From assembly GCA_900088475.1 (NCBI GenBank), contig FLMG01001010.1:1-64000 (forward strand): DNA of 64,000 bases, read 5' to 3'. This DNA comes from Hyphochytrium catenoides (lineage: Eukaryota; Protista; Hyphochytriomycota). Below, in pieces: positions 155-57,532 of this stretch (positions are counted from its first letter, which is position 1; the number at the start of each line of letters is the position of its first letter). The notes beneath the pieces were generated by a model. That model ran no database searches. It was not told the origin of the DNA and saw only the letters and a program-made list of their open reading frames with translations. The position numbers and the translations under genes were made by a program.

Positions 155-629
155 GCTTGGCTCTTATCATCCAAGGCGCGGGTGGAAGAAGTGCCGTTGC
201 TTGCCAATGCGTCTTCTAAGCACTGGGTGTTAAGGGGAAGTAGCTTTTGATGGGTAGAAGGTGAATATGCGAATGCGTGAATACTAGGAAGAGCGCTTTC
301 TGGTCAGTCTCCATCCACACAAGAAAGTTATAAGGTAGCTCGCTCCACAGTTCTACTAGCAAACTCCTCTGCTTGTCCTCGCTCATAGGAGAGAATGAGC
401 TAGTCGGAGACGTATTGACAGAGACCGTTAGTTCAGCTGGTGTAAGCTCCTCTTGATGAGAACCAAAGCCGTCAACAGAGGGAAGAAGGAAGAGGGGAGA
501 GAGAAGAGTTCATCAAGTCGAAGTCTCCATTAGTTGAGGAGGAGATGATGGTGCCCTCAGAAACAAAGCTTAGGACATGCTTTACGCCTGTTCTAGAACT
601 ACTTGTACAGCTGGCTTCTGCATAGAACT

Positions 630-785
630 ACTCTCTCTCTCTCTCTCTCTCTCTCGTTCTCTCCCGTCCTCCCTCTCTCTCTCCTGTCCTTCTCTCTCTC
701 TCCTGTCCTCTCTTCTCCCTTTCGTCTCTCTTCCTTATCTCTCTCTGTCTCTCTGTGTCCTTCTCTCTCTCTCTCTCTCTCTGTG

Positions 786-823
<38 letters not shown>
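630..823. repeat. (CT)n-rich microsatellite/low-complexity tract
   Basis: Long imperfect CT dinucleotide run; the overlapping L/S-rich ORFs are artefacts of it. Confidence 0.95.
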
Positions 824-825
<2 letters not shown>

Positions 826-1481
826 TTCTGTACTGTTAATTTTTCTTCAACTGCATGACCCACCCTCCACCACGTTTGACCACGTCTGAGCAACGCGTCC
901 TCATAATAATACTCTCCTCCCTCTCTAGCCTACTACCCCCATACCCTGTCAGTAGTAATATAGTAGTTGATGGCCCGCAAAGAGCATCCGTCCAGTGCGC
1001 TCGTACTCGTACAACCTCCGCTTGAGATCAGTGAAACTTACATGAATTTTTAATTGGAAGGTTTCCCACGACCCGAAACAAATAGTCACGTTTATGAAGT
1101 ACAATGATAATGTACAATGATGTACCAGAAAGGAACTTTCCCAGCAAAATGTGGGGAAGGTTTCAAGAACTTTCGACCTCACCTGAAAAACAAGAAGAGG
1201 ATGACGTGGTGAGCAAGATGATTTGGGAGATCACGCCTAGATTCGGACGTAGAAGGTATGCCCTTCTTGAATTACGGCTCTTCCTGTTGATGACAAGCTC
1301 ATCTGAAGCTAAATGTGGTACATCTGTCTCTTATAATCGGCACGGGCCCTAAAATACAAGTACTGAAGGGACTTCACATCTTCACACCTCCCACCCTCCT
1401 CACGTCGGTCATCAGGGAAGGGTGATGATTGATGGTAAACCGTCTTTCACAGATGATGTTCCTTCTGATCTTCTGTTGCAC

Positions 1482-2297: not shown

Positions 2298-8381
<6,084 letters not shown>

Positions 8382-11111: not shown

Positions 11112-13043
11112 ATGACTAGGACGCGATCCGCAGATCAGGAGGGCCATACTTGCCATGGAAATGTCAACATCGTGGCAGAAAAGTCCGACATAACAGAGAC
11201 CCATGGCACCGATAAAAAGTCTGAGTATATACAGACTGGTGTCGCTCTCGCGATGGCAAGTCAAGACAAACGTATATGGACGAAGAGGGCCACGATCATC
11301 TTCTGGATTGGACTAATGACACTTGCCTACGTCTACACTCTGGAGCCGTCAACTACGTACCTTTACCTGTACACAGCGACCTCTTCCTATGCGAATCACT
11401 CGCTTCTTTCAACAGTACAGACAGCATCAATGATCGTTATCTCTGTCGGAAAGCCCCCTCTTGCGAAGCTTGCGGATGTAGTTGGAAGAGCAGAAAGCTA
11501 TTGCGTGTGCGTGCTCTGCTATGCGATCGGATATCTTACCGTGGCAGCATCCAACAGCTTGGGTTCTTTCTGTGCAGGAATCCTCGTCTACTCGCTTGGA
11601 TACACAGGGCTCCAGGTGCTGAATCAAGTCATCATCGCTGACATCAGCAATCTCAGATGGAGAGGACTGGCCTCAAGCATTATCAGTATTTGGTTCTTCG
11701 TCAACGCCTTTGTCGCATCCAACATTGCGGCTGACGTCCTGAAGAACTGGGGTTGGCGCTGGGGTTACGGAATGTTTGCCATCATCGTCCCCGTGGCTGC
11801 CACGCCTATCATCTCGACCCTCTGGTGGGCCCAGCGCCAAGCAATCAAGCTACAGCGGGTCCACGATTTGGCTGCTGATGACAGCAACGATTTGAGCACA
11901 GTGGTATCGCGAGGGTTAAGTCCCCGCGCGAGTCACTTGACAGCTCCAACGCGGAAAACCACGAGTTCAATCCACCGGTTGGTCTCCCTGATGGACCAGT
12001 TGGATATCATCGGCTTAGCTCTACTCACTGCGGGTATCACCTTGGTACTTATTCCCCTTACCTTGGCACGCAGAGGAGTGTCTACGGATTGGGACTCGGC
12101 AAAGTTTATTGCGATGTTTGTCTTTGGAGGACTGTCGCTTATCCTCTTCGTATTGTGGGAGAAGTATTACGCGCACTATCCTGTCATGCCGTTTCGGTTC
12201 TTCCGCATTCGCAATGTCCCTTTGGCTTCGCTCATTGGGTTCTTCGACTTCATATCTTTCTTTTTAACTTCCACCTATCTTCACTCTTTCGTCAAGGTCA
12301 CGCGCGATATGAATGACAGGGACATCGGATATGTCATGTACGCTCAGCTGCTGGCACTGACCGGGTTCGGCATCCTGGCAGGAATGCTGATGGCATACAC
12401 CAGAGACTTCAAATGGACGCTACTGGGTGGTCTGATTGTACGCCTTGTGGCTGTAGGGCTAATGATCCCATTCCGAGGGCCCGGAACGTCAACCGTTGAG
12501 TTTGTCCTAATCCAAGTGCTGCAAGGCGCTGGTGGAGGCTTCGCGGCAATTACTCTTCAGGTTGCTGCCCAGGGAGCGGTAAAGCATCANNNNNNNNNNN
12601 NNNNNNNNNNNNNNNNNNNNNNNNNNNNNNNNNNNNNNNNNTGGGCTAACACGATGCCTGCTAATTTGGAGGAGCAGCTTGGTGGTCTTCTCAACACCAC
12701 TGAGATTGCCTCGATCTATAGTTCTATCGATGCAGTTATGAGCTATGATATCACGTCCCCTGTGCGGGTGGCAGTTATAGCTGCTTATGCCGATGTCATG
12801 CAGATACTGAACATCATGGCCACAGTCACGGCTGTGCCGCCGCTATTCTGCGCCTTGCTCTTGCAGAACTTCGTGCTAACCAATGCTCACAATAGCGTTG
12901 AAGACAAAGATCTTCGTGAGCAGACAGTACAAGATGCGCCTGAAGGTTATGTGATACATCCGCAGACATCTGAGTCGATGGACCTCAAATCCCCTATGGC
13001 AACGAGAAGTCAACCACGACGTGATGGGCAGAGTCTCGTATAG
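11112..13043 (+). CDS. Siderophore-iron transporter, MFS ARN/SIT (Sit1/Str1/MirB-like) family; intronless
   Basis: 643-codon hydrophobic ORF with family motifs HSLLSTV, KPPLAKLADVVGR, GYTGLQVLNQVIIADISNLRWRG, WRWGYGMFAII, LDIIG and QVLQGAGGG..QVAAQGAV.H. An N-gap at 12590-12641 lies inside the CDS. Confidence 0.9.
   Translation: MTRTRSADQEGHTCHGNVNIVAEKSDITETHGTDKKSEYIQTGVALAMASQDKRIWTKRATIIFWIGLMTLAYVYTLEPSTTYLYLYTATSSYANHSLLSTVQTASMIVISVGKPPLAKLADVVGRAESYCVCVLCYAIGYLTVAASNSLGSFCAGILVYSLGYTGLQVLNQVIIADISNLRWRGLASSIISIWFFVNAFVASNIAADVLKNWGWRWGYGMFAIIVPVAATPIISTLWWAQRQAIKLQRVHDLAADDSNDLSTVVSRGLSPRASHLTAPTRKTTSSIHRLVSLMDQLDIIGLALLTAGITLVLIPLTLARRGVSTDWDSAKFIAMFVFGGLSLILFVLWEKYYAHYPVMPFRFFRIRNVPLASLIGFFDFISFFLTSTYLHSFVKVTRDMNDRDIGYVMYAQLLALTGFGILAGMLMAYTRDFKWTLLGGLIVRLVAVGLMIPFRGPGTSTVEFVLIQVLQGAGGGFAAITLQVAAQGAVKHXXXXXXXXXXXXXXXXXXWANTMPANLEEQLGGLLNTTEIASIYSSIDAVMSYDITSPVRVAVIAAYADVMQILNIMATVTAVPPLFCALLLQNFVLTNAHNSVEDKDLREQTVQDAPEGYVIHPQTSESMDLKSPMATRSQPRRDGQSLV
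12590..12641. other. Assembly gap (N run) inside the siderophore transporter CDS
   Basis: 52 Ns. Family members carry a full transmembrane helix here, so the true gap may be longer. Confidence 0.95.
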
Positions 13044-14191: not shown

Positions 14192-16374
14192 ATGGCAACG
14201 ACAGGTCATAAAGCAGTCTGCTCTCGCCGACCTTTACTTCTCCCTTCTAATATCTTGGTCTTGCACTCCTTCATTATACCCTTCCTCCAGGTCCTAGTGG
14301 CAATCAGGCAAGAATCGCCGTGTTAACTTATAACGTTCTCGCTCAAGTCTATGTCCGGTCCTCATTCTTTCCTTATTGCCGAAAGGATATTTTGAGGTGG
14401 AAGAACAGAAGCGAGGCACTGGTAGGAAAGTTCGAGACAGCTCGCCCTCCAGCCATTCTCCCTAGTTCTAGCTTGTCGCTCCGTTCATCTCCGCCTCTGA
14501 CCCTCACTACTTGGCAGCAGACTCACCTCTCCCTTAGATAACCTCTCACCATCGTTTCGTTGTCTGATCTTCTATCGTCTTTCATGCTCTGGATAGCGCC
14601 AGCAGTTCCTTAGCTTCACCCACCCAAAGCCTACGGTTCTCTGCTTACAGGTACGGATGCTACCCATCATAAGATAGGAACCCACATAATATCTCATGTT
14701 GCTGTCTCTCTTGCTCTGTTACATATCTCACTTTCTTTTGAATGTAGGAGGTTGATCAGTACGAGGAGTTCTGGTCAGGCCTCCTTTCATCTTTGGGGTT
14801 TGAGAGGTATGCAAGCGTTATCAATCAGCCCTTTACGTGCAAAAAATCCAGGGTTCTCACTCTCACGCTCTCCAACCCCGGTCTGTCTCTCCGGGCTCGC
14901 AGCACGTACCAGCAAAAAGGAACAGGAAAGAAGGACGGTCTCGTCATTGCCTGGGATCCTGAGAAGGTGGAGTTGCATCAGACTAGCCCAGTGTTGTTGG
15001 ACGAGGTCGCAGATGACATAGCAGGTCTGTCTCTCTCATTACCAGCAGCGTTGGCCCTTGCCCTCTTGAAGTCTCAATAGGTTGCGTTATTGAGACGCTT
15101 GCTGTGCAACCGGCGGGGTTCCTGTTTACTTTCCTGTTCCCAGTGCTTTTACTCTGTTCTCGGCTTTTTCCTTTTAGCGCCAGGGCTTGCTCAAATTTCT
15201 CGCAACCTTCTGCCGCAGACTCCTCTCTCCTTGGTGTCACTCTTTCCTTAGCTACGTTTTCGTCTCACCTCGAACGGCCTACTTCACCGTCTCTGTCCTC
15301 CCGCTGACTCCACCCGGGCACCCCATCCGCTGTGCACCCTCTATCTTAGACAGTTCGAACAGGGAATGCCCAGGTAGCGGAGACATATAGAAGGGGCAAT
15401 GTAGCGCTCTTTTCCGTCTTTAGAACAAGAGACGGAGACGCTGGAGATGAGAGCAGAAAGTTCATTCTCGCCACGACTCATATCTTTTGGGATCCGCTCT
15501 TCGCACACGTGAAGCTAGCTCAGGTTCGCAGCCCATCCCACATCTTGAATAGGTTGTTTCCTCTTTTTGGCCCGCCACCTCGTTCTCACAGCCATGGTGC
15601 CGGGACCGGGGTCTATTACTCTCTAGACCTTGTCTGCTTCGTTCGATTATACGCATCCTAACCATTCCTCATTCTTGTGAGGATGATGTGCTCGCTATAT
15701 GCCTAACGTTGGACTATTGTCTGACTAAGAGTCTGCCTATTTGAATTGATGCTAGGCGGACTACATACTCAAGAAACTAACAGCATTCAAGGCAGATGTA
15801 GGCGCTCCTGTTCTCTTCTGCGGTGACCTTAACTCTCTTCCCGACAGCGAAGTGTATCGCCTCATCACTAAGGGGGAACATGCCCTTCTTCCGGAGACCT
15901 CTGCAAAGCGATTGACGTTCAGTAGTGCCTATGCGTCCGTTGGCTCATACCCTTCTGCTCAGAACCATGAAAGAGAGCCGGACTTCACGACATACGTGGG
16001 CCAAAAGGAAGCTGGCGTGCCTGGGTTTAAGGGCTGTTTAGATTACATATTTTACGAGCCAGATAGGTCAGTAACTTAGAGATCAAGGCTCGTCCTGGCT
16101 GTGTCTCTACACCCTGTTCCTTTCCATGTGTCTGTAATGATTCTTTTCTGGCTCCTCTTCCTCATATCTAATGACCGATGATAACACACTTTCCCTTCTA
16201 CCTCCAACCTCTCAATCTTTCCTCCTTTTCTTTTTTTATAGCTTTGAGGTAGTAGGTGTCTCTCCTCTTATATCTGAGGAAGAAGCACAGAGAGAAGGTG
16301 GACTCCCGAACTCCAGATTCCCTTCAGATCATCTGCCGCTCCTGGCGGAGCTAACCCTTCGAGGATCGAGCTAG
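14192..16374 (+). CDS. CCR4/nocturnin/angel/PDE12-like EEP-family phosphodiesterase/deadenylase, multi-exon
   Basis: Spliced motifs LTYNVLAQVYV..FFPYC...LRWKNR, VLCLQ|EVD, KKDG, ATTHIFWDP...VKLAQ, CGDLNS.P.S.VY, CLDYIFY and LPN..FPSDHLPL. Stop TAG ends at 16374. Confidence 0.9.
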
Positions 16375-16494: not shown

Positions 16495-19400
16495 CTAGAA
16501 AATCTCCTCTTCGCTGAAGTCATAGACAAATTTAGACATGTTAGAGGACAGGCGAGGAAATTGAACCAACAGTAAGGGATAAGGAGTCAGACGAAAGGGA
16601 AGACACATCCCTACCTCTCATGGCCAGCATTGTCTGCCCCTGAGATGACAGAGAGCTGGTCGGAACCCTCGACACCCTCTTCGTTCTCGGAGACCTGAGG
16701 CAAGTGGTCAATGTCAAGAGGTTAGGGACTGGATCCCAAACTTGCAGATAATTCCTCCAATGTAAAGGACATTTGAAAATTTACCATACCTCGGAGCTTT
16801 GCTCTTGCTCTTCTTCCTCTTCGCTAACTACTACTTCATTTCCCTTCTCCTCCGCGTTAACGCTCGGCGCAGAAATTCCCTGTGCAGCAGCATCCTGTCT
16901 CTCTTTCTCCTCTGCTTGTTCTCTCCTTCTTCTCTCGAGCGCTCGCTGTCTGTACTGCTCAAGCAAGTTGGAGCTCTCCTGTTTTTTCTGCTCTTCCGCG
17001 AGCCGCTCTGCAGCTTCTTTTTCTTCTCGTTCTCGTTTTGCGGCCTCGTCTTTCATTCTCTCTTCCTCCTCCTGGCGGCCAATCTTCTCTTTCTGGCGGC
17101 TCGCTTCCTCTTCTTTTGGAGTGCTCTCCTCGCCTACTTCTTCCTCCTTGAGCGTCTCTTCTTTTTGTTGAGACGAGCCTCCTATAAAGGTCCTTTCTTC
17201 TTCTGTCAGCAATGGCCGTTCAGCAAGCTGTTCAGCCCCTTTGCTCCTCTCTACCGTAGTTTCTTTCTCTTCTAAGTCTTCACTATCGATACTACCCTCG
17301 CTTTGTCTCTCAGCCGTGTTGAAAGACTTTTCTTCCTCGTCTTCCTGTACTTCTTCCCCTGTGACCTCATCTTGGTCATTTGACGTTATCCTCTCCTGCA
17401 ATCTGTGGGGTTCTCTACTCTCCTGGTCGTCACTTCCTCTCGGCCCCGTGTCATGATCTATTTGTTGCATGTGAAACCTGTCTTGGTCTCGTCTCTCTCT
17501 TTTCGCCGCCTCCAATCTCTCGGCCTCTCGAATCTCTGCTTCTTCTTTATCTTTTCGTTGTCTTTCTTGTTCGTCTTCTAACCTCTTCCTTTCTAAGTTG
17601 TTCCTCTCTTCCTTTTCCCGTCTTTCATTTTCCCGCCTTTGCTCCTCCATCTTCACTTCGGCTTCCATCTTCTCCTTCTGTTCTTTCTCTCTCGCAAGTC
17701 TTGCTCGTTCTTCTTCTTCTTGCCTTGCTCGCATATTGGCCTCTTCCAGTCTAATCCTCTCTCTCTCCTGTTCCAGCTCTTTCTCCAGTTTTTGCCGAGC
17801 TTCTATCTGTTTCTGCCGTTCTGTTTCAAGCTCTGCTCTAAGTCTCTCTCTTTCGGACGCGATCTCTCTCTCCAGCTTTGCTCGGGCTTCCTCTCTCTCC
17901 CTCTGTTCGCTCTCTTCTAGCTTTTTCAAACGTTCTAGGGACGAGCGTTGGCTCTCCTCCTTCTTCAGCCTTTCTTCCTCCTCTAGTTTCCTTTTATGCC
18001 CCTCTTCTTGATGCCTTTCAGCCTCGAGTGCTCGTTCCTCGTCTATTCTCCCTCCACTAACAGAGTGGGGTGCCGTCAGCCTATTGCCTGGACTATATGA
18101 CCTTTCTGTTTCTCTCTCCACCCTGATTTCATCGTCTTTCGTAGATGATAGAGTGAGCTGGTAAGACACGTCCCTGCCTAAGCTAGAGGAGGCAGGAGGT
18201 GACGGCAACGGGGGAGGGGAAGGAAAAGGTGGGAAGGAAGTGGGGGAGAGAGGAATGGTAGAAGGAGGTGGCTGAGAAGGGAGTGCCGGTCTCGCCATAC
18301 GACCTCCTCCTTCACCCGACGTCCTTAGGAGGTTGAGGCCTGAGGACGAAGAGATATCTACCACATCATAGTAGGAGTGACCTAGACGATCGAGCTCTCT
18401 ATCTCTCCTCAGTTCTTCTTTCTCTTCTCGCGAACCTTCACCTATTTCGCCTGGTTGCCAAGGTGAACGGCATGCCGGTGGGTGCGGTGGAGGAGGAGGT
18501 GGTGGTGGAGGAGGTGGACGAGGAGAAGTTACGTGGCTGGGCCTGAGAGAGACAGGGCTGGCAAGGAAACGGGAGACTGCATCACCGCCATTGTCGCCTC
18601 CACCCATTCTGGCACCTCCGCTGCCACGATGAAGTGGGGGAGCTGGAGGGCGGACAGCTCTCGGACTCTCCTGCATTGGCGGAGTGGTCGGGCGAAGAAG
18701 AGACGAGGAGAGGGGTGGAGATCTTCTATCGCTGCCTGCTGTTGACAGACGGTAGTCTCTGTCAGCTGCATCCAGAGTGGCCTCGGCTGCTCTGACTTCC
18801 TCTTGCTCAGCGGGCCTAGAGCCCAACGAGGGAGCTTCCGAAGCAGCTATGAAGCCTGAATAGCAAGAGGGTAGATTGTTAGCTTTCTTCATCCTCTACT
18901 CTGCTACCGCCAAAATTAATTGCGGGTCATGGCATCTATGCTCTTGGACGATGTCCTTTACGCCCTAGCGAGCTCAAACGTCCTTGATGGATAGCCAAAT
19001 TAGGATAATTGGTCAAAGCACCGCCTTACAATACCTGAGAGATCTTGTCCAGCACCCTGTCCCACACTTCTACGATACTCCGCATCGTGAAGCGACCGCG
19101 ATCTTCGCCGATGATTTTCTTGAACAGAAGGCTGGCGTTGGGGCATGTAAGCTAGCATCGAGAACCTCGTGAGAGATTTATCCAAAGCAAGAGAGAGTGG
19201 CAGTAAGGGAAAGTAGGTATAACTAGGCATACCACGAGTCGCCGCTATAGCAGTCATGACAGAAATGAAGACAAGAGGCGGTAGAGAAAGCGAGAGGAGA
19301 CCAAAAGTTTCTCTGACACTCGAGAGGAGCAACCTACCAATGGAGTTTCGACTGGTTTGATCATAGCCTAGCACCTACAAAGAAAAGGACGTAAGTAGGA

Positions 19401-30472: not shown

Positions 30473-33400
30473 ATGGCCTATGCAGAAAGCAGAGCATGGA
30501 TTGCTTACTACGCCAAGAATGGGCTGAGCGGCCATCTGGGAGCACTTTGCGAGTCGGAGTTGAAGGTCAAAGGCAAAGACCCATTCTTCATCTTCTGGGG
30601 GGCCGTGGCGTCTATGCTTGAAGGTACGAAGGGGTAGTTGCTGTCCATCCGTCCTTGACCACAATCCTCTCCGTCGTTGCAATGACCGGGCTTTCCCGCC
30701 GGAAGAACCTAACCTGACTGTACCTCCAGGCTCCTATTCTGAGGCTATCCATCTACTTGATTCAATCAGAACCAAGCGTGAAGTCGAACTACCAACAGTG
30801 GCTGCGCTACTGCACGCCCATAAGAAGTGCAACGTAGTGGATAAAGAGGAGGTAGCAGCCCTGGAGGCCCTGCTGCAGGTGGCAGAGGATCGCGCTCCAG
30901 ACACTGCGGCAGTTCATGTAAGACAAGGACAACCGCGCAGCAAGGGCTAGGCGGAGACAGCACACCGACAAATTTGGAGAGGCGCTTGCGATTATCAGTG
31001 GGAAGCTCAGCGTCACCAAAGGGGCAGTCTGGTGCGAAGAGAGAGAGCACATCCTCAAGCGTATGAACCATAAGGAGATAAGCATCTAGGCCAGAGTAGT
31101 AGTCTTCAAAGTATTGGTCACAAGTGCAAGTCTCACTCTCATGTACTAAAGTGAAGCTCCATCCCGTCCTTTCTCCATTATTCCGTAGGCGGCGTACTTC
31201 CATATCCATACGAGCGGCTTCAAGGAGGCTGCCTCGATTCTTGACAGTATACAGGCCAACGCTAATACTGAAGGGGCTATTCAGGCTCAGTCTGCACGAG
31301 GCCTTTTGCTCCTTTCTGACCCTTCTCAAGATCCTTCGGCCGCATTGGCTTACTTTGAGAATCTAGATGAGCGGTAGGTATTTAGTTCACCTACAGTGGC
31401 GGTAACCTCTTCCTGGTGATGCTTAGACATTACCAATCTCCAATCCGGATGCGTTGCATCTTTCATTCTTCTGTTTATGTCGCTTTATCAGTCGGGGCTG
31501 TATTATCTTCTTTCGTTTGGTGTGATCCCTTTCTCCCTGTGACTCTCATGTATCCCTTGTAGTCGGAAGAAAGATCTGGATGTCCTCATGGGCATGGCAG
31601 GATGCTTCTGGAGAATGAAGGCTTTTCCGCAGGCAAAGGAGATTCTCAACAAGGTACTCAGCCACCTATCCAGCGCAGTTTGTCTCTTGTCTTTCGCGAC
31701 TGCTCTCCTTCTCCGCGCTTGTCTGGGTCCCTCTTTAAACCTCAATCATCCCTCATCTTTAGGTTACCTGTGGTTCATCTGCCCATGTTTAGTGGTAGCC
31801 GATTCTCAGCGCACGATCCCATTTGGTTCACTCCTCTGGCTACTCCTCACTCTTTTTAAGTTTTATTAACCTCATTCCATTAGATCATCGCCACATACCC
31901 CACCTTCTACCCAGCTCTTAATGAAAAAGTGCGAGTTTGCGTCGCCCTCGGCGAATGGGAAATGGCCGTAGAGGTGGCTCAACGGGCGAGGACTGCCAGG
32001 CGGTACGTCGGCACCCATAGACATCTCTTAAACAAAGCTGCTCCTCTTCTCATCTACCCTAATCATATTGCCGCGGCACTAGGCAAAATCCCGATGCTTT
32101 GATCTCTTTGGCCCTCATCTACCTAGCTCGTGATGGAAATCTTGGAGAAGCACTGGAGACCACCAAAGAACTTACCAGTGCTCTAGAAAACACCGAGCGC
32201 AATAATCCTAAGATCCTGGGTATCCACTTCCTTATTCCCACCTCCATACTCTCTATGTCTCATTTCGTATCATCATGATCCCCTCCGCATTCGGTCCCTT
32301 CTAAATCACTGTTGAGCATTACTTCTTCGCTAGAAATGTTGGTTCGCACTTCTTTGAACCGAAAACATCGCGACTCTCTGTACGAAGGTCTTCTGGTAAC
32401 GATGGCTACCTGCTTACATCCTCTCTGAGAGGTGTTATCAGTCGTCTCTCGACAGCTCTTCACGTACCGCTATCTTGTGCTAACCTTTATTGCGTTTAGT
32501 TGACTACGCCAAGCCATTGGCTAGACTAGCGGGACGAAACGAGGCGATGCTCAAGGCCACGCTGACCATGGTAGGAAGGGCCAGGAAACTCAAACCAGAG
32601 GACGGGTAGGTCCTATTCGAATACTATCGACATCATGATGGATTCCTACTGTTTGTCGCTGAACACTGGGGCTGTTATATGCTTCCGTGTTTGTTCACCT
32701 TCAACTTTTCGTCAAACGCTGTTTTGCTGTCTTGCCAGCTCTCGTGCTGGTCATTCTCTGATACTTAGGAGCAATCTTAAAGTCCTCAAGGACTTCGGTC
32801 TTGCTTTCTTGTTCAGTGTTTGTCTTTTGGCCTCATACTGTTCCCTGCTACTGCTACGATGCAGTGCAATCCTCAATGAGCTGGGCTACGAACAAAGTCT
32901 ATTGGGACGGTACACGGAGGCATTAGAGTCATTCAAGCAGTCCCTTCGATTTGATGAGTCAAACCTAGATGCTGTTCAGGGTAAGAGTCGAAAGAGAACT
33001 CTGGCGCAAACCTTCTACCCTTATGTCCACTTTCCTTTACTTCTCTTTGTGATATGTGCTGCATTGGCAAAATCGGGACTGATCAGCTGTTGATTGACCC
33101 ATTCCAGGTATTATCTACTGCCAGATCAAAGATGGGAGAATAGAAGACGCAGAACAGCAGATGGAGTTTCTTAATGTCCTCACGGTACGAATGGCCCGTG
33201 CTGGGACACTGAGTTGCTATTTTAGCTTTGACTGAGATTCTTCTCTCCCAACCTAATATGTCTATGTGATACCCTTCCCACTCTTCTGTGCCTTTAATTC
33301 GTCCATATTCTGGTGATAGATCTATTTTATAGCTTGTCACCCCTTGCTCTTACCACTGTCCGTTCTTGCCATATTTTTTCCAGGAGGGAGAGAGTTTGAG

Positions 33401-39588: not shown

Positions 39589-40100
39589 CCGCGGGACCGG
39601 GGGCAGATGTTTGTGCAGACTGAGTTATGACCATCCATATAGTAGGAGAGATCTTCATATATGTTTGAACGTTCTTCCACATGGCTTCAAGACAGCTTCC
39701 GACTAGCGAATAAAGCAGGTTATTCTGTTTTTGGCAGTCTGGTAACCTATTTCCACTCTGGCTCCCAAACGGTTGCATAGGACATTAGAAGGGGACGACT
39801 CCGCATTGGAGAAGATGCACGAAATAGGAAGGTCAGGTGTTCAATCTTGGTTGATGGGGAAATGTAGAACACGGACATCTACAGAGCAGAGCATAGGCGC
39901 AACTTCAATATTAAGCATTACTGTGAGAAACACGTGAAAGGGAACCAGAACGCTCCCCGTCCCTATAGGAAAGGATTAGCGGGTGGTGCAGGTCATCCCA
40001 CATCTCCTCGGCCCGCTGTCTCGCTCTCTTTCTCTTCCTTTACACTCATCACTTCCACCCCCTCCAAACATGTAAAGAACAGCATAAAAGAAGAGAGTCA

Positions 40101-41758
40101 CTAGATCATGAATGCCAGATCATTGTTCTTCCTTCCGTCACCAACGTATACGGTCCCGAATTTTGGCGTGTTGACTACATGGAAACTGCACGATCCTGGC
40201 CATACCAAGTTCCGAATGTTGACTACCTTCGAATCTGGCCGGATTTGGACGGTCCATGTGGCTAAGAAGCGGTGAGATGGAACGTTGACGATCAAACAGA
40301 GAAATATCAGAAGACTGCGCACCGCTGGCGGTACATAAGTCAAGGAAAAAGCATTTATAAAGAGCTGCGATAGAGAACAGAATAGGCTTGATGCCCAAGG
40401 AGTGAAGCGGGGCAATTAAAGCAGGAAGTGCTATGGAAAGGGCTTTTGCCCTGATAGTGGCCTAATAGTATGCATTTATGGCCCTACCTTTAGGCTCGTC
40501 ATCAGCGATGGGGTCCAAGAAGTCTGTTGACCTCACCATTCCTTCTTTCTCTAGCGCATTCTTCACTAGGTCTCCCCGAGCCGGTCGAAAGTGGTAGTAG
40601 GACTCGAGCAGTGCTGCTGACCTATGGTCTAGACCTAAACCAGCATATAGTAAGGTCGCAAGGAGCCATTAGAAGCATGTTAGGAAACCGTCTTAGAAAG
40701 GGCAGGAAGAGGCTTGTTTCGCTTTCCGAAAAGAGAAGTGATAAGGAAGGAAGGAAGGAAGGAAGAAGTAATCTGGAGAAGAGAAAGACGAGGGAAGGCT
40801 CGAACCTAAGGATTGCAAGAATCGGCGACAGGGGGCGAAAGTGCGTTACAGACACAGAATGAGACACACAGAGCATAAAAGTGAAAGGGCAGAGAACGTA
40901 TTGAACGACAAGCAAAGGGAAGGAGTTATAGTGTTGTTGAGGACATCGGAACGGGCAAAGAGTATCTGTGCACCTTGGAAGACAGTGTTTTTGATAACTT
41001 GATGGCTAGGCGAGACGATCCATGAGTCCCGAGGAACAATAGCGATTTCATCCTCTATTGCCTGGAGAGTAGTAGGGAGAGCAGCCGTAAGACCCGAGGA
41101 CGAATGCTCTATAGTTCTTAAGACACCAAAATCAATGGAAACAAATGCAGTCGGATACAGACGCCAAAGAGAAGGAGCCTCCAGGTTGAGACAAGAGACT
41201 AAACGTGACCGAGGAAGCGACCCTCCACCAAGGGGGAAGTGCAAGAGCGACGAAAAAGTATGAAGAATTCGAAGTATAAGGAGTTGTCATACAAGAATTG
41301 TAGCAGCTAGACGGTGCTCTTCCCGAATAGCTTTCCCTTCCTCAATGGGGTCTCTGAGATCTTCATAAGCTAGTGATGGGTCTCCCTTAAACCTCTTCAT
41401 CATGCCTAAGAGCTGGGGCTTGAGTGAAGAGTGCACCTGCGGAAGTTGCTGGAGCTCAAAGTTTGTGGTGGTGCTAAGATAAGAAGATGTGACTGAGAGG
41501 GCTGTCGTCGTAACTCTAGCAAAGTGGTGGTCAGGAGGCTTACCAGTAATAGAACTTCTTAGTAGGATGCTGCTTAGTTGGCAAGAGGCCAACAGCAATG
41601 AGGTAATCCTTTTCATCTCCTAAGATTCTGCCCCAAAACTGAATCTGGGACAGATTTTCTTGGTTTAGCCGCTTTGAGAGCTCGCCTTCAAGTGCGGAGA
41701 GCTCCTCAATGGTCAGAGTCCTTCCGATATTCAGATAACCGAGATGTTCGAGATCCAT
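40101..41758 (-). CDS. RSPH9: Radial spoke head protein 9, 5 exons
   Basis: FWGRILGDEKDYLIA, KKFYY, FKGDPS, REEHRLAATI..IEDEIAIVPR, FQGL...YYHFRP, DFLDPIADDEPK and RNLVWPG..FH....FGTVYVGDGRKNNDLAFMI, stop TAG. Confidence 0.93.
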
Positions 41759-44700: not shown

Positions 44701-45768
44701 TGCGGCAGCATTGTTGGCCGCAGCCCACTAAAAAAGATCCAATGACATGATGGCCGGAATGGATAGAAGTCAATGCAACAGACCGCCTCATCTGTCCTTT
44801 CAATGTCCCTATAAAAGATCTGCTTGGTGGGCCCCTGCAAGCCAAAATTCTCAACGGTGGTAGAAACTTGATGATGAAGACGACCATTAGCGCCCTTCTA
44901 ATGCCTTCTCATCAGAAGAAGGTGCCGCCACCACTTACATCGCCCTCACAACATCAAGATCAATGGATAGGGCTGCTCGCTGGTGCCGCGGCCAGAGAAA
45001 GCGGTAGGTTGTGCCGCTGCAGATACAGGACAATTTAGAAAAAGGAACATATCCATCATTTGGCACTCTTCTTCGTAGAAAGGTCGAACCTGTCGTTCTT
45101 ATTTAGAAGAAGGAGGAGGTGGTGGTGGTCAAAGCTGCGAGGCGTAGATCTAAGCATTTGTTCACTCAGGAATGGCAAGTTGCTTTGAAGGGACGAGGTT
45201 GTAGCAAATGCCTCTCATACAGACTGAACCGCTTTATACAGCAGGCTGCTATTTTAACAGCTGGCGGTGGAGCAGGTGAGTGCAGCAGCGCACCGTGATA
45301 AGAAAAGGCAGCTTGGTGTACGGGCTTGTTAAGTCTCTTCCAGGGAAACGGTGTTAATGGTGTGCGAAGGCAATAATAACCTCTAGATAGAGAAGCTACA
45401 ATATTGAATGTGAGAGGGCTTCGGAACGTTAGAAAGCGCATCTTTATCTGGTTTTACTGGTAGCCCATGGTCACCTGATGCCGAAGGATGGCTACAAAGG
45501 CCAGCAGAATGAGGAGACTGATCCCCTTGCAACGGGACGATCCTTAGGAAGAGATGCAAAGCTTCTTAAGATGGCTGTGTGTGTTCCTGCTCAAAGTATG
45601 TTAACATCCACGAACGACCATGTAAAAGTGAAGCTTCCCTAGTTTCCTCAGCCTAGACAACCTCGATAATTGTTCTCACTTTTAAACTTCCTGTGTGTCG
45701 AGCAAGTGCGTGCTGGAAGCCTCAACACCGTGGCAAGACTGCTCAAAAGCCGCTGTTTAACTGAGAGC

Positions 45769-46725
45769 ATGTTGAGACAAATCCCCCTTCTCGTATACGT
45801 GGCGGCTACAGCCATAGGAGTGCTACAAACACTTGTTCAGAGGGCGGCGGCAGACTCATGCACAACTCCAGAGCAGGACGTCGACTTCTTTGGTAGCGAT
45901 ATTGCCAACTCGCTGGGAAGACCTGAAGACTGTTGCGGCAGGTGCCTCAGCAACCCAAACTGCGCGGCTTTTACCTGGAGCGACTGGGCGGGGAGCACTT
46001 GCTGGCTCAAGTCTAGCACTGGCACACGAACGTCGTCTAAGGGCAGAATATCTGCAGTTGTCGTCCCGAATACAAACTGCGGGCAGACATTTACGAACAC
46101 GGACTTCTATGGAGACGATCTTCCGAACGGGGCTGTATCTGGGCAGTACAAGAGCTGCTGCGGTGCGTGTAAGGCTCGCTCCGGCTGCGTGGCATGGACA
46201 TGGATAGATTATCTTGGAGGGACCTGCTTTTTAAAGCGTGGGACTGGGAACAGAATGACCAGACCTGGGGCGATCTCTGGTCTGCTATCGCCGCCACCAG
46301 ATTGTACCCGGGTGCCAAACATTGACTTCTTCGGCAGTGATATTCGAAACTTCAGAGGTTCACTTGACAATTGTTGCCCGGAATGCGTGGCAGACTCACG
46401 GTGTCGCGCATGGACCTGGAACAGCTACCTGGGTGGCACCTGCTGGTTGAAGTCATCTCAGGGTACACCCACAAATGCTCCTGGAACGACCTCTGGATTT
46501 GTCAACAATCGCTGCCAGACTGAAACCTATCCAGACAAGGACATAACGGATTCCGACATTGGAAACGTCAAGGGTACCCAGGAGAGCTGCTGCGACCAGT
46601 GTAAAGCTAGGGCGGGATGCCAAGGATGGGCGTGGAATAACTTCGAGGGTGGCACTTGCTGGCTCAAGAGTGCCAGCGCCCCTGTGATCAATAAGCCTGG
46701 TGTTACAGCTGGGAAGATGAAGTGA
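45769..46725 (+). CDS. Secreted protein with 4 PAN/apple domains (CBEL-like lectin-type repeats); intronless
   Basis: Signal peptide MLRQIPLLVYVAATAIG..., then four repeats of C..D.D(F/Y).G.D....CC..C.....C.A(F/W)TW....GGTCWLKS. Confidence 0.88.
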   Translation: MLRQIPLLVYVAATAIGVLQTLVQRAAADSCTTPEQDVDFFGSDIANSLGRPEDCCGRCLSNPNCAAFTWSDWAGSTCWLKSSTGTRTSSKGRISAVVVPNTNCGQTFTNTDFYGDDLPNGAVSGQYKSCCGACKARSGCVAWTWIDYLGGTCFLKRGTGNRMTRPGAISGLLSPPPDCTRVPNIDFFGSDIRNFRGSLDNCCPECVADSRCRAWTWNSYLGGTCWLKSSQGTPTNAPGTTSGFVNNRCQTETYPDKDITDSDIGNVKGTQESCCDQCKARAGCQGWAWNNFEGGTCWLKSASAPVINKPGVTAGKMK

Positions 46726-47329
46726 GCGACATGTCCGACCAGCGACATTTGAGGAACCGTACAGATGGATACTAGACACTCGTTGAACAGCTTCTTCCTC
46801 GCAGAGTTGAGAAGTTGTTAGCTCGGCTACTCAACTGCAGCCACTACTTATATGTTTAGCCATAGCGTAGAAACTTAGTATTCAAAGTAATGCAGTACAT
46901 GAGGAGCTAGCATCATGATGAATGGCCCTGCACTAACTCTATTAAGCGCCGGCGATACTTCCAATCCAAATGACTTTCAGCAGCACCAGCAGCTAGCTAA
47001 AGTAGATCTCTTTATTCGCGATGACATCTGTGGACTATCAAGGTCCTTTGACTGTCTGGCGGCAAACCAAAGGTTGCTCGCGGCGGCTGCACTACTACTA
47101 CAAAGTTGATGAAGAAGGAAGACAACGGCCTGCTGATCATTGCCTTGAAGACCATCGTACGGTGATGGTGGCAGAGATTCCTGTGGCATGCAGAGAAGAG
47201 AGACGGAAGAGAGAGAAGAGAGAAAAGAAGTAAAAAAAGATTTGAGGAAGAGAGAGAGATAGTGATGGGTGTAGGCCATAGCTGCACAGCAGCCTAAGTG
47301 ATAGGTTCCCCGATGGAGAGTGAAAATGA

Positions 47330-47521
47330 AGGAGAGAACATGACGCGAACAAAGAGAAAAAAGATAAGAGTGGTGAGGGAGACAGAGCGACAAAAAGAGA
47401 GAACCGGAGAGAGACAGAGAAAGGCAGAGAGAGGGAGGGGGGAGAGAGAGACACACACAGAGAGAGAGAGAGAAAGAGAAAGAGAGAGAGAAAGAGGGGT
47501 CTCTAGAGAGAGAGAGAGGAG
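47330..47521. repeat. (AG)n-rich microsatellite/low-complexity tract
   Basis: Imperfect AG/GA run. Confidence 0.9.
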
Positions 47522-49517
47522 GCACGCGTCCCTGTCCTTCCTTCTATCTCCAGATGTGAGCTTTAGGGGGTCTCACTGTACTGTTTTATGCCCACAATGA
47601 CCCATCCACCCTCCACTGCCCTTGCTAATTATTGTTTCAAATTCTTAGCCATAAATCGGATGGGTGGGCGCAAGTGCTCTGTACTACAAAAAATTTGTGC
47701 AGGTCCCTCTACCTGTTCCTACCCATCCTATGCCAAATGCTGTGAGATAGTGTGGTAGTTTTGTGTATGTCGGGTGGGTGGGAGCCCAAGGGCGGGGAGA
47801 GAGGCCTCCTCCTCTGTTGGTTTCGTTCTGCCTCCTCCTCTTCTTTATCTCTTCCTCCTACCTCCTCTGTTGATGAGAAGACCACGACAGAAGCAGCGGA
47901 GAGACGACAGACAGCCAGGGAGGAGAGAGGGAAAGAGAGGAGAGAGAGAGAGAGGGTTGACCAGCCCGACGGTAGCGTGGTCGCTACTACTATACTACTA
48001 CGGCCTGCAATAAAATGCTTGTCGTCGTCGTGGTGGACTTGCTCCTGGTCCTTCTCCTTCTGCTGCCGCTGCTGCTGCGGCGGCGTATGAGACCATTACT
48101 CTGGTGGCCGTCTGTGGCCTACTGGTGGTGAGGAGGAGGAAGACGGCTAGCAATAAACATGATTCAACGAACAAGGGCCAACCTTGCCGACAACAAGAAG
48201 GAAGATGAGATGATGGCCGGAAAGAGGAGCCTAGGGGCCACTTGCACTAAAACCAGGGCCATCACCCAGTGCAGCGGCTTTCTACTAGCAGCGGCGGTCT
48301 ACTAGGTGAGGTCGGGGAAGCAGCATGATGAATCATAGTTACTTTGTGCGCAAGCATCGTTTGAGACCACAACAGCTGATGAGGCCACCATTCAACTATC
48401 CTGCTTCTTCTTTTTCTCTAGTAGTAGAAAAATTCACAATGTCTCCTGAAGTAGTGGCGCATCGAAGACTGACTGACTTCGCCTTCAGGGGTCAGCTAAG
48501 CCCTTTATTACTATAGAAGTTATCCAGGGATAACATCACGCACAGTTAGATCATGACTAGTCTTTCATTATAGACCTGCTTTGATATCACTACTGACAGC
48601 TTTATTTCCGCTTGGACTGGTGATCGGCCATACTTCTCACTCTTCTTCTCCTCGTCTTCGATAAGTGTTCAGAGATATAAATGAGAGCGATTAGCAAACT
48701 GAACTTCTTGGCATTGTGAGTTTTCAGAAGGACAATCATTCTTAGGGCAGGTTGAGCTTCTTTTGTCAAGAAGAAGGAAGCCGTACAAACAAACTTCGTT
48801 TTTTTTTTCTGTTCTCTTATTATCTCTTTCCACTTCATATTGGTGCCCATTGATGAGTAGGCTTCTGGCTCCTATCCATTAGTAAGTAAGTGCTCAATGT
48901 AATAACCAATAATCTTCACGACTCTCTTAGCTTGCACCCAGTTCTTTCTCCTGTTAACTCCTTGTTGGCCCAAATCACTGCGGTGTAGCCTTATTACATT
49001 AGGTCCGCCGCCGTACGCCACGACAGGAAGGTGCGAGTCCGCGGGGGAGAGACCAGGTTCTCTGCAGGATAGACTGTCGATCACGGATTCCATCGCACTT
49101 CTTCTTGTTGAGTCAACGTTGCTGCCTCTATGTCCTACTACTACTATAGGTGGTCATCACTAGCTACAGCGCTACACTATGATGCACGAAAGCTTGAATA
49201 AACGAATTGCAGCAGGAGACATCTCATTCATTACCATTATTATATAACTAGGTGACCGATGAAGGCTGGCTGAGTATTTCTTGCTTTACTTCTCCCTTAC
49301 CTCTTTATAAGTGGGTCTGCCTTGTGAGCCACTGCCTGACGGACGACGTGAGATGCTCCTTTAGTCACTAGCAGCTACATCACAGGAGTGTCCGCCGGAA
49401 TTGATCATTCTTTAAAGTTCACTGCCACTGACAGGTGCGGCGTTATGGACACCAAGGTGGGAGTCCCAACTTCAAGTAGGAACCCTCATCAATACCTAAC
49501 GTGGCATCAGCAACACA

Positions 49518-50339
49518 ATGATGATGCTCCGCCGGGCTACCTCTAGTCCTTTGTTTCTCTCATTTTTGGCTATGGCCATAGGGGCACTTTGTCCGCACAA
49601 GACGATTATTGCAGCAGAAGATGGCAACACTGCAGAAGTGGCCGCTCCAGACAGGAGGAGCGAGTATTGCGGTCACCCACTCAAGGACATTGACCTCTAT
49701 GGTGATGACATCGGCTCCGTCCGTGGGCAGTATGACGACTGCTGTGAAGCATGTAAGAAGCTGGCTGAGTGCCAGGCATGGACCTGGATAGACTACCAGA
49801 CAGGCACCTGTTTCCTTAAGAAAGGACCCGGAACCAAGGTCAAAAGAGAAGGGACAGTCTCTGGTTCAATGTTTGGATTGCCTATAGACGGGCTGTGCAT
49901 CATCAAGCATGACATTAAGTATTTGGGCAAACCTCTGGCGGAGATTGGGGCAGCAAACCCTGATGAATGCTGCACTGAGTGCCTTAAACACCCGGAATGC
50001 CTGGCATATTACTGGACAAAAAATGCTGGTGGCACCTGCTGGATGCAGGCATCGCCCCTCCAGCCAAGATGGGACCCAGGCAGATGGTCAGGATTGGTGG
50101 AAGACCGCTGCGAGAGCGATGCGACATATCCTGACACGGATATATTGAACTCTGACATTGGTAACCAGCCAGGAAGGCTGGAGGATTGCTGCAAATACTG
50201 CAGAAAGACGCAGGGCTGCGTGGCCTGGGCGTGGAATACCCACGAAGAGGGCACATGCTGGCTGAAGAATGCCAGAGAGCCCATGATCAAGAAGACCGGA
50301 GTGACTGCGGGCACCCTGAGACGATGGGTCTGGTACTGA
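49518..50339 (+). CDS. Secreted protein with 3 PAN/apple domains; intronless
   Basis: Hydrophobic N-terminus (LFLSFLAMAIGALC) and three CC..C...C.AW.W...GTC(W/F) repeats; paralogue of the genes at 45769 and 54015. Confidence 0.86.
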   Translation: MMMLRRATSSPLFLSFLAMAIGALCPHKTIIAAEDGNTAEVAAPDRRSEYCGHPLKDIDLYGDDIGSVRGQYDDCCEACKKLAECQAWTWIDYQTGTCFLKKGPGTKVKREGTVSGSMFGLPIDGLCIIKHDIKYLGKPLAEIGAANPDECCTECLKHPECLAYYWTKNAGGTCWMQASPLQPRWDPGRWSGLVEDRCESDATYPDTDILNSDIGNQPGRLEDCCKYCRKTQGCVAWAWNTHEEGTCWLKNAREPMIKKTGVTAGTLRRWVWY

Positions 50340-52392
50340 TGAGGTGTGCACCACCAGGATTAAAGAATGCTTTTCTCAGCCTACTCTTGATTGTGCTCAA
50401 GGGTCTATCAAGTCTTATGTCTGTGCCTCTTCTTAGTTTTGGCCGATGAGAGGGGAAGATGACAAGCACTAACAGGAACAGTGACTTCGGTAATAGGAGA
50501 AGAAAAGATTACATATTCATCCTTATGAAGAGAGATCAAGTTTATGAAAGCTCCTTTAGCTATATGGCTCCTCTGCCTTGTCCATCTCTAACAGACGATG
50601 AGAGGCAACCCATCGCATCAAAGTCTGATGAATGGGCGACAAATACGACAATGCTCTATTCGACATGGGTCAAGCAATCAATCGAAGCTTCTTAAAGATG
50701 GAGAGCCATTCACCATAGCCCAGTAGGCCTGTACAGTCCATCATGAAGTTGGTTGGTGGCCGCTCCTTGTCAGGATGAACTGATTTTTATAAGTAGGAAA
50801 GGATGAGCTGTCCATCGTCCATGGTTGATCCTGATGATTTCTAGAAGAACAATTCTCTATTCCAAGCAAGATACGCGAACGTGCATGGCGAGAGAGAAGG
50901 AGCTGCATAGAGGAAGGCAGGGTGCTCCTGCTGCCATCGTAGCATCTAAGATAGCGGGCCATGGGCCGCAGGCTCGGCAGCTTCATCATCTGAGAATATC
51001 AGTGCTGCTCCTGAACGTGGTCTTGGGCCATCAGCAGTGAGAGGGTTTACGACGTAGATAATCAAAGTAGTGCTAGCCCCTTAATAAACTGAGTCCGACG
51101 ATGCAGTTGCGATGCTGGCCTCCGGGTTACAAAGTCAGGTACTACTACCTACTATTGGCGTACCAACTCTGATTGCCATTATTTGCTCGCTGCTGCGATG
51201 GGAACAAGAGGAGCCGATTGAGGACCAGCAGCAGCCTCCTTTCTCTTCTCCAAGCGCGCAAACTTCTGGTTGAAATAAAAAATGAATGTGTTATTTCATG
51301 ATCCTCCTCTTTGAGCGCCCTCTTCGGTAGCGAATCATCACAATGACAGTAGGCCACCCGCCCGTTGAAGAACATTAGTTACGAGGCAGCAGCCACGAGT
51401 CGAGAGCAGTCTTCGAGAATGCAAAAGCTGACAGTGGTGGTGGTGGTGCGAACAATGAGCCATGAAGCATAGATACTACGAAGCTTCTGTTCTGGCTGCT
51501 CTTCAATAATCTGATGATGATTGTCAGCTCGCTTCCCAAAGATCACAACGCTCTCATCATAGAAAGGAACTCTACTTTTAGCCACCATAAAGAATCCATG
51601 GCTGGCCAGAACTTCAAGAAGAGCACGCAGCAGCTGCTACCAAGTGCAGAGAAAATCATCAGCGCATGACCTGTCTGTCTACACTGCTGCTCCCTCCCTA
51701 TCCTTCTCTCCTCTTCTTTTGTCGTCCTGATGAAGAGCCATCGTATTGGGCGGGGACACCCTGCAACCAAAAAACTGCTTCTTCGCCCTTCCTCTTGTTC
51801 CGCGCCTCAATCTTCGAATCCACAATCTTTGAATCCACCAATCCGCAGCTTTCCTCTTTATTCGCGCGTCTTCAAGTCTTCGCCCTCGCGCCTGTCGCAG
51901 CTCCCAGGCCCTTCTTCTTCTTCCTCTTTCCCTGCTCCTCCTCGTCGCTCTTCGATCTTAGCAGCATGCAGCAGATCACTCAGTCATCATCAGGTCATCA
52001 AGCTCCTCCCCTTGCCGCCTAATAATAAGACTGGCGTTTCCATCATAACGGCGTTCTTATGAAGGGCTTGGCCTTGTGATAAATCTTGGAGCCTCACTCA
52101 TCCTTGTGAAAGGCCGTTTGATGTGGTAAGGTGGGTGGGGAGAGAGGGGAGATATTAACTATGAGGCCTAACTACCTTTCAACGGGTAGGACCCATCCGT
52201 CCTCATGTGCCTAAACTCGGGAAGAAGGGGTATATATGGCTATAACTTTCGGCAATTGATGTCGTGACTCTAGTCGTGTCCTTGGTCAGCCTTTTATCGA
52301 TTGGCAACTTTTGGGAAGAGGTTCATACTTTCGGTTGCCGGACACAGAAGCGTTACTTGGTGTCAAAGACACTGTCCTTTTGTAACCTTGTT

Positions 52393-52600
52393 TCTGTCTC
52401 TTTTGTTCTCTGTCTCACTCTCTCTCTCTCTTTTCTTCCATCCTTCTCTGTCTCTTTCTATCTCTTCCTCACTTACCTCTCTCCTCCTAGTGTGTCTCTT
52501 CCTCTCTCCGTCCTCCTCCTCTTTCTCCGTCTCTCTTTCTCTTTCTTTTATCCCTCTTTCTCCCGTCACTCCACTATCTCTCTCTCTCTCTGTTTCCCTT
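52393..52600. repeat. (CT)n-rich microsatellite/low-complexity tract
   Basis: Imperfect CT run. Confidence 0.88.
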
Positions 52601-57494: not shown

Positions 57495-57532
57495 NNNNNN
57501 NNNNNNNNNNNNNNNNNNNNNNNNNNNNNNNN
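57495..57532. other. Assembly gap (N run) abutting an AG microsatellite
   Basis: 38 Ns. Confidence 0.95.

Follow-up and report, generated by a model that had tools for sequence, protein, structure and literature searches.

A SIT/ARN-family transporter gene resident in the stramenopile Hyphochytrium catenoides and probably acquired from a fungus

A review of fungal siderophore metabolism counts the siderophore-iron transporters (SITs) among the small number of protein families found in fungi only, and on these grounds proposes them for fungus-specific drug delivery and imaging; it also summarises the role and energetics of the family, whose characterised members in Ascomycota as well as Basidiomycota are importers of ferric siderophores (Haas 2014). 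Aspergillus nidulans MirA and MirB and Saccharomyces cerevisiae Arn1-4 are characterised ferri-siderophore:H+ symporters of the SIT/ARN family, to which the protein described here also belongs. Gene transfer from fungi to Pseudofungi is likewise on record. It has involved transporters and cell-wall enzymes of oomycetes, and cases of transfer from Spizellomyces to Hyphochytrium are described in a recent osmotrophy study (Nat Ecol Evol 2026). The same study includes OG21887, a 'Major Facilitator Superfamily' family shared by Pseudofungi and Fungi with an uncertain direction of transfer, which could be the gene analysed below or another MFS gene.

We analysed a window of 64,000 nucleotides of the Hyphochytrium catenoides assembly (contig FLMG01001010.1, positions 1 to 64,000). 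An earlier note, made from the letters of this window alone, had placed an intronless fungal-type siderophore transporter in a flagellated protist and proposed that it arrived by horizontal transfer. The non-fungal identity of the host was borne out: the genome encodes HcKCR1 with 100% identity to PDB 8h86, and the 4759 contigs of the assembly searched agree with the published assembly of H. catenoides, which has 4758 scaffolds plus the mitochondrion. The host is thus a flagellated stramenopile 'pseudofungus', a relative of the water moulds and not a fungus.

The transporter CDS occupies 11112..13043 on the forward strand, stop codon included, as a single exon of 643 codons as assembled (18 of them X), running from an ATG start to a TAG stop with no internal stop codon. 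The ORF is therefore uninterrupted, as had been claimed. Pfam MFS_1 matches the N-terminal 492 aa at 2e-20 (73 bits, cut-off 33), fungal SIT homologues align along the ORF in order, and the gene is single-copy in the whole assembly.

One of only two N-runs in the window, an assembly gap of 52 N at 12590..12641, lies inside the CDS, a caveat that the earlier note had rightly raised. The part before the gap (11112..12589) carries the N-terminal tail, helices 1-12 and a long central loop spanning roughly residues 245-295, and the part after it (12642..13043) carries the last extracellular loop, helix 14, the C-terminal tail and the stop codon. This predicted layout, DHA2-like with 14 helices, derives from hydropathy and homology: 13 helices are visible in the profile, which peaks at residues 565-583 in the post-gap piece, and the fourteenth, helix 13, would fall under the gap. 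The pre-gap piece, whose best fungal matches cover 99% of its length, ends at a conserved 'PH' (H492), and the post-gap piece alone matches residues 492-581 of the 593-aa fungal homologue P0006 (41% identity, E 6e-14). Since the post-gap piece continues the homologue where the pre-gap piece ends, the two flanks are taken to be consecutive parts of one gene of the SIT family, a join that rests on homology. From H492 to W511 the homologues have 28 residues, as against 18 X in the window, and a hydrophobic 28-residue stretch is present at this position in every homologue compared. The real gap is thus expected to measure about 82 nt, 30 nt above the 52-N estimate and with the frame unchanged, which would give a gene of about 653 codons. 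Each flank occurs once in the assembly, and no other contig or haplotig supplied a fill. Apart from the assembly gap, the gene is intact.

The best relatives of the protein are all fungal SIT/ARN transporters, collinear from start to end at 40-49% identity (E 1e-115 to 1e-80). Those of Basidiomycota come first (E 1e-115 to 1e-100, 42-49% identity over the full length); they include Rhodotorula toruloides JCM10295v2_006903, an Exidia glandulosa 'drug:H+ antiporter', Kwoniella newhampshirensis IAR55_000936 and a protein of Sistotremastrum suecicum, and they share with the H. catenoides protein a length of about 600-640 aa and the conserved motifs, and have the 14-helix layout that is predicted for it. 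They form its sister group in the maximum-likelihood (ML) tree, but their hosts are fungi, and the H. catenoides protein stands outside their 31-row clade on a longer branch. The characterised MirA, MirB and Arn1-4 are more distant, at 25-35% identity; their substrate specificity is not transferable, and the yeast Arn proteins lie outside our alignments; MirA itself aligns end to end at 29% identity (E 6e-53).

In the site-heterogeneous ML tree, a SIT clade of 49 rows, 48 of them fungal and one from H. catenoides, splits from bacterial EmrB/QacA rows with 100/100 support and includes proteins labelled MirA, MirB, MirC, Str1 and SIT3. The H. catenoides protein also keeps 33 of the 38 positions that are invariant among nine fungal SITs (87%), within the leave-one-out range of 64-100% obtained for the fungal members themselves. 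The SIT/ARN assignment made in the earlier note is confirmed by this clade, the conserved columns and the MirA alignment, and by these sequence measures the protein belongs to family TC 2.A.1.16. The long last loop was considered as a SIT-specific trait and rejected, as bacterial EmrB-type outgroups carry a loop of similar length.

Relatives outside fungi were sought in two protein collections. A word search returned 95 matches, of which all the named ones are fungal except two weak matches labelled EmrB/QacA. HMMER, run exhaustively against 1.84 billion representatives, gave 3508 matches, none at 50% identity or more, and every named cluster among the best 30 representatives looked up belongs to Dikarya. 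Names are missing for about 100 of the top 150 representatives; in a tree of 199 rows, none of the unnamed ones is a specific sister of the H. catenoides protein. The protein has no self-match in either collection, and so the gene is not independently confirmed by a second assembly. Apart from the two weak EmrB/QacA matches, no non-fungal relative was thus detectable by sequence in the word search, the HMMER search or the named clusters. This distinguishes the gene from the known transfers from fungi to Pseudofungi, with which it shares the proposed direction, the recipient group and the nature of the product, an osmotrophy-related membrane transporter: within the protein representatives searched, it is seen only in the hyphochytrid and not in oomycetes.

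Both halves of the gene are anchored in DNA of host type. Upstream, a multi-exon ABC transporter lies at 3437..7865 on the reverse strand. Five short, separate ORF pieces match its ABC_membrane and ABC_tran domains, and the exons, at about 3900-7100, are split into many small parts; no N-run separates this gene from position 12589, so that the sequence continues unbroken into the 5' half of the transporter gene. Downstream, the sequence is free of N from 12642 to 57494, which makes the 3' half contiguous with the N-terminal exons of the ciliary marker TTC21/IFT139 at 30500..30905 (+). These exons match ARM_TT21_N with 53.6 and 25.8 bits, the only such matches in the whole genome. IFT139 is not known from Dikarya. 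An Exo_endo_phos exon (CCR4-type, EEP) at 15765-16088 came from the genome-wide family scan, while Pfam gave no match on three CCR4-like ORF pieces; a SWEET gene follows downstream on the linked host sequence, and a radial-spoke match at 40086-40253 is weak. Of the neighbours listed in the earlier note, those of ABC, CCR4 and TTC21/IFT139 type were found, and one of radial-spoke type with a weak match.

The composition of the gene is that of its surroundings. Its GC content is 0.50-0.52, its GC3 0.52-0.59 against 0.49-0.65 for the neighbours, and its codon-usage correlation 0.50 against 0.24-0.66 for host genes. The gap-free linkage to the intron-rich ABC transporter and to IFT139, together with this host-like composition, excludes a Dikarya contaminant and shows that host DNA surrounds the gene.

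An assembly artefact, whether through contamination by a fungus or through a chimeric joining of scaffolds at the N-gap, is highly improbable. Such an origin might be suspected from the short-read Platanus scaffolding of the published assembly, from the position of the sole nearby scaffold join, inside the gene itself, and from the missing self-match in the protein collections. However, each half is contiguous, without N, with genes of host type (ABC upstream; EEP, IFT139 and SWEET downstream), the halves follow one another in frame as successive stretches of a single family member, and their composition equals that of the neighbours. A contaminant should moreover be nearly identical to some sequenced fungus, whereas the best identity is 49%, and the screens reported in the genome paper found no eukaryotic contamination.

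Two features that might have pointed to transfer proved uninformative. Neither GC3 nor codon usage bears a foreign signature relative to the neighbours and host genes, and composition was dropped as a transfer signal. [quoted passage not shown]

The ML tree was built with bacterial EmrB-type proteins as the outgroup; it contains no named early-diverging fungi, fungal DHA2/GEX outgroups, oomycetes or other hyphochytrids. Its ML topology places the H. catenoides protein as sister to a 31-row clade dominated by Basidiomycota (UFBoot 51) and outside that clade (90/88), that is, not nested within it. A FastTree placement inside a Basidiomycota-dominated clade (99 SH-like, 199 rows) did not recur with the site-heterogeneous model and is not relied on; the AU test described below is not significant. 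In the unrooted tree, 700 of 1000 replicates attach the protein to the central branch that divides the two main groups of fungal SITs; this deep branch separates the Basidiomycota-dominated group from the Ascomycota/Ustilaginomycotina group. The H. catenoides branch itself is a long one (1.0 changes per site).

Of the earlier proposal of horizontal transfer, the non-fungal host and the absence of detectable non-fungal relatives stood, whereas the topology gave little: UFBoot is 51, a tree uniting all 48 fungal rows to the exclusion of the H. catenoides protein withstands an AU test (delta lnL 3.0, p 0.22), and the tree singles out no donor lineage. We favour horizontal transfer, on a weak topology: the gene probably came from a fungus in the distant past, although transfer cannot be proved from the family tree by itself. 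The gene would then have entered the hyphochytrid lineage from a fungus in an event that appears old because identity to the nearest known proteins is 40-49%, codon usage is host-like and the position on the internal branch is deep.

A real SIT gene that did not come from fungi is unlikely. The family could be older and lost elsewhere, or a hyphochytrid or a third party could have passed it to the ancestor of Dikarya. The AU test leaves room for a position as sister to all sampled fungal SITs, the central branch favoured in the unrooted tree is where a root could lie, and hyphochytrids are represented by a single genome. On the other hand, H. catenoides has one copy against many paralogues across Dikarya, the 1.84 billion representatives yielded no stramenopile or protist relative, the protein falls outside all fungal rows in just 2 of 1000 bootstrap trees, and a vertical history would need many independent losses. 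That the gene is a sister of the whole fungal family and not a twig within it is very unlikely; if it were so, the SIT family would have arisen outside fungi and then passed to the Dikarya ancestor or, alternatively, would be an older eukaryotic family surviving in just two distant osmotrophic lineages.

As far as the literature searched shows, a bona fide SIT of a stramenopile would have no precedent outside fungi. Iron piracy would then join the osmotrophy traits that pseudofungi seem to owe to fungi. The general picture would be unchanged, transporter transfer from fungus to pseudofungus being already well documented. The word 'siderophore' is absent from the main text of Leonard 2018, iron is not mentioned by Savory 2015, and we found no literature joining 'Hyphochytrium' and 'siderophore'. 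The word is also absent from the text of the Nat Ecol Evol 2026 osmotrophy study and from the available part of its supplementary tables, which is no proof of absence from that study.

From the family function only, the protein is predicted to bring ferric siderophore chelates into the cell across the plasma membrane by proton-coupled transport. Neither an NRPS condensation domain nor an IucA/IucC synthetase was found when the genome was searched for siderophore synthesis genes, so the substrates would be foreign siderophores that fungi or bacteria nearby produce. Uptake of such foreign siderophores is the likely role, judging from the gene content of the genome, and we infer from family membership only that hydroxamate siderophores are taken up. 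The same strategy of siderophore piracy is used by Saccharomyces and Cryptococcus. As a whole, the account of a resident single-copy nuclear SIT gene, obtained from a fungus by an old transfer and serving ferric-siderophore import, a function taken from the family only, seems to us moderately probable.

Not every member of the family is an importer: Gex1/2 of yeast are glutathione exchangers, and MirC of A. fumigatus has an intracellular location. It is conceivable, if rather doubtful, that the H. catenoides gene was acquired as described and does not import siderophores, its product acting instead in DHA2-like efflux of drugs or metabolites, in GEX-like glutathione exchange or in a MirC-like intracellular role. 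NCBIfam finds weak similarity of DHA2/EmrB type only, and most close homologues are annotated automatically as 'drug:H+ antiporter' or plain 'MFS'. The set compared contains no experimentally characterised member of the nearest, Basidiomycota-dominated subfamily; the 5 of 38 fungal-SIT-invariant columns that differ and the long branch are also consistent with a changed role. Against this, the protein lies inside the clade of MirA, MirB, MirC, Str1 and SIT3, apart from the EmrB-type rows at 100/100, the 'drug:H+ antiporter' label stems from automatic pipelines, and the characterised SITs of Ascomycota and Basidiomycota import ferric siderophores (Haas 2014).

A single intronless gene offers a simple testable case, as it is directly expressible in a standard yeast arn mutant. 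No solved SIT structure was found on which binding residues could be mapped, the sole match in a PDB search being a distant glucose transporter (1.9e-05); ESM Atlas look-ups gave family-level agreement only.

The siderophore-iron transporter (SIT/ARN) gene of Hyphochytrium catenoides occupies 11112-13043 (+) as a single open frame of 643 codons, running from ATG to TAG with no internal stop. This bears out the earlier note's description of an uninterrupted MFS ORF that spans an assembly gap, and the 492-residue part ahead of the gap matches Pfam MFS_1 at 2e-20. The gap consists of 52 N at 12590-12641; the only other N-run of the window lies at 57495-57532. When aligned with nine fungal homologues, the pre-gap sequence stops at a conserved 'PH' (H492) and the post-gap sequence opens at an invariant W (W511), with 28 residues between them in the homologues versus 18 X in the window. 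From H492 to the start of the last helix there are 73 residues versus 82-83 in the homologues. The 133 post-gap residues by themselves match residues 492-581 of P0006, a fungal homologue of 593 aa (41% identity, E 6e-14). Order, spacing and this separate C-terminal match thus identify the two flanks as consecutive parts of one gene, and neither flank was found in any other contig of the assembly. Hydropathy makes 13 helices visible, and a single further hydrophobic helix is predicted to be hidden under the gap. A true gap length of about 82 nt would be expected (28 codons minus two bases already read); 82 and 52 share the same remainder modulo 3, and therefore the reading frame is kept at either length.

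Hyphochytriomycetes are the sister group of oomycetes and have a flagellated zoospore. Contig C2531 of the assembly encodes, over two exons, a protein 100% identical to PDB 8h86 (269 aligned residues), which is HcKCR1, the H. catenoides kalium channelrhodopsin. The host genome (61.0 Mb) comprises 4759 contigs, a count equal to the 4758 scaffolds plus mitochondrial genome of the deposited assembly (Leonard 2018, PMC5795050). Consequently, the host is a hyphochytriomycete, flagellated and non-fungal as had been supposed, and not itself a zoosporic fungus.

No N separates the 5' half of the gene from many short ABC_membrane and ABC_tran exons (- strand). From 12642 to 57494 the sequence has no gap, and this stretch carries the 3' half together with an Exo_endo_phos exon found by family scan (15765-16088), a weak radial-spoke match, PAN/apple genes, a two-domain SWEET and two TTC21/IFT139 N-terminal matches (30500-30905), the last being the only ones in the whole genome. 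Family matches of the Pfam type thereby confirm the multi-exon ABC neighbour and the TTC21B/IFT139 gene read earlier from the sequence. Dikarya are not known to have cilia, and linkage to a ciliary gene on gap-free sequence therefore excludes a contaminating Dikarya contig. Composition is likewise host-like: GC is flat along the window, GC3 is 0.52-0.59 in the SIT/ARN gene versus 0.49-0.65 in its neighbours, and its codon usage correlates with that of the pooled neighbours at r = 0.50, their own range being r 0.24-0.66. The gene is single-copy in the host genome.

A word-index search returned 95 matches, the named ones all fungal except two weak ones labelled EmrB/QacA. Basidiomycota came first (E 1e-115 to 1e-80, 40-46% identity, 86-100% coverage), followed by Ascomycota labelled MirC, MirB or siderophore transporter (25-35% identity). 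NCBIfam gave the 492 pre-gap residues weak matches to DHA2/EmrB-type models. A further word search that started from a Saccharomycotina member added the characterised Aspergillus nidulans MirA, which is 29% identical to the H. catenoides protein end to end (E 6e-53). Because the absence of other relatives carries the claim, 1.84 billion representatives were also searched exhaustively with HMMER. There were 3508 matches below 1e-3, of which 266 lay below 1e-30; identity was 46-49% at best, and none reached 50%. Names were looked up for 30 representatives, highest-scoring or tree-relevant, many high-scoring ones being nameless; all named clusters among them were Dikarya (Rhodosporidiobolus, Kwoniella, Sistotremastrum, Guyanagaster, Jaminaea, Pterulicium, Tilletia, Saitoella, Acaromyces, Wallemia, Rhizoctonia, Favolaschia, Thecaphora, Phenoliferia, Malassezia, Aphanocladium and Pseudovirgaria). 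The putative transporter retains 33 of 38 columns that do not vary among nine fungal SITs, a share inside the leave-one-out range for the fungal members, and this argues for continued selection on it. Although reads and gene models of H. catenoides have been released, no identical or near-identical protein (query 11112-12587) appeared in the word search of 5.8 billion clusters or among the HMMER representatives; the gap may have disrupted the gene model, or these collections may lack the genome.

Fragments and fusions longer than 720 aa were left out of the trees, which sampled no named early-diverging fungi, oomycetes or other hyphochytrids. FastTree (199 rows) placed the protein inside an 88-row clade whose named rows are Basidiomycota in all but one (99 SH-like), and none of the unnamed representatives came out as its specific sister. 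With IQ-TREE (LG+C20+F+G4 by PMSF, 52 rows and 592 columns, bacterial EmrB/QacA-type rows as the root), the SIT clade including the protein was recovered at 100/100. The protein fell outside a 31-row Basidiomycota-dominated clade (90/88), its position within the SIT clade having low support. Of 1000 bootstrap trees, 514 made it sister to the 31-row clade and 290 to a small Ascomycota clade; only two placed it outside all 48 fungal rows. In the topology test proposed earlier, an AU test did not reject the 48 fungal rows together with the protein outside (delta lnL 3.0, p 0.22). A third tree dropped the distant outgroup and the longest rows, the rows left out of it being P0072, P0083, P0084, P0092-94, P0134 and P0234, and gained three MirA-clade rows; 700 of its 1000 replicates put the protein on the central branch between the Basidiomycota group (29 rows) and the Ascomycota/Ustilaginomycotina group (17 rows). 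Its branch measures 1.0-1.1 changes per site versus a median of 0.6. The protein is thus a deep, long branch within or beside the fungal radiation, and no donor lineage can be named from the trees.

Transfer from a fungus into the hyphochytrid lineage is the most economical reading, mainly because of distribution: many paralogues in Dikarya, one copy in one stramenopile and none elsewhere in 15 billion proteins. Tree topology lends only secondary support. The low identity, host-like codon usage and deep branch point to an event that would be old or followed by fast divergence. The intron argument advanced earlier for transfer carries little weight, the genome averaging 3.64 introns per gene (Leonard 2018, PMC5795050) and the window holding other long single-exon ORFs. 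These include a two-domain eukaryotic SWEET sugar transporter (55806-56666, -), whose nearest Atlas clusters are from plants, and a Cas1p-type 10-TM acyltransferase (58810-60582, -; 1.2e-75).

Characterised SITs are regarded as proton symporters importing ferric siderophores, also in non-producing fungi (Haas 2014, PMC4162504). For the H. catenoides protein we infer siderophore uptake from family membership alone. Exon-by-exon family scans of the draft genome detected neither an NRPS condensation domain nor an IucA/IucC synthetase nor an FTR1 iron permease, and what matched lysine/ornithine N-oxygenase was marginal and generic; on a draft assembly scanned in this way, these absences are provisional. 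As synthesis genes were not found, siderophores made by other microbes would be the likely substrate. A different substrate or direction of transport is less likely but a fair possibility, as yeast Gex1/2 and A. fumigatus MirC are SIT-family members with other roles. If the absences of FTR1, NRPS and IucA/IucC hold, import through the candidate SIT would be the only high-affinity iron uptake route identified in the organism.

SITs have been described as unique to the fungal kingdom (Haas 2014, PMC4162504). A literature search found no paper pairing 'Hyphochytrium' and 'siderophore', and the main text of the genome paper (Leonard 2018, PMC5795050) does not mention siderophores. Nor does the word occur in the text or available tables of a recent survey of transfers among osmotrophs (Nat Ecol Evol 2026), which lists one MFS family shared by Pseudofungi and Fungi, its direction uncertain, that could be this gene. 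Fungus-to-pseudofungus transfer is an already known pattern; what is new is a SIT/ARN member in an unexpected lineage.

Elsewhere in the window, three ORFs share the + strand at 45670-55157, and both of those scanned carry several PAN/apple domains. A single-exon ORF of 703 aa at 16781-18892 (-), without a Pfam match, is proline-rich in its N-terminal third; the rest is very long, Glu/Arg/Lys-rich and coiled-coil-like. Just downstream of the ABC gene, 577-858 (+) is of low complexity, and two of its + frames, which overlap, translate as long Leu/Ser repeats. On C2531, the HcKCR1 gene (about 15.5-17.2 kb) reads as a single 557-codon ORF because its intron of about 237 codons has no in-frame stop; the PDB 8h86 protein matches only residues 1-194 and 432-506 of this ORF, and ORF-based callers would therefore over-predict HcKCR1.
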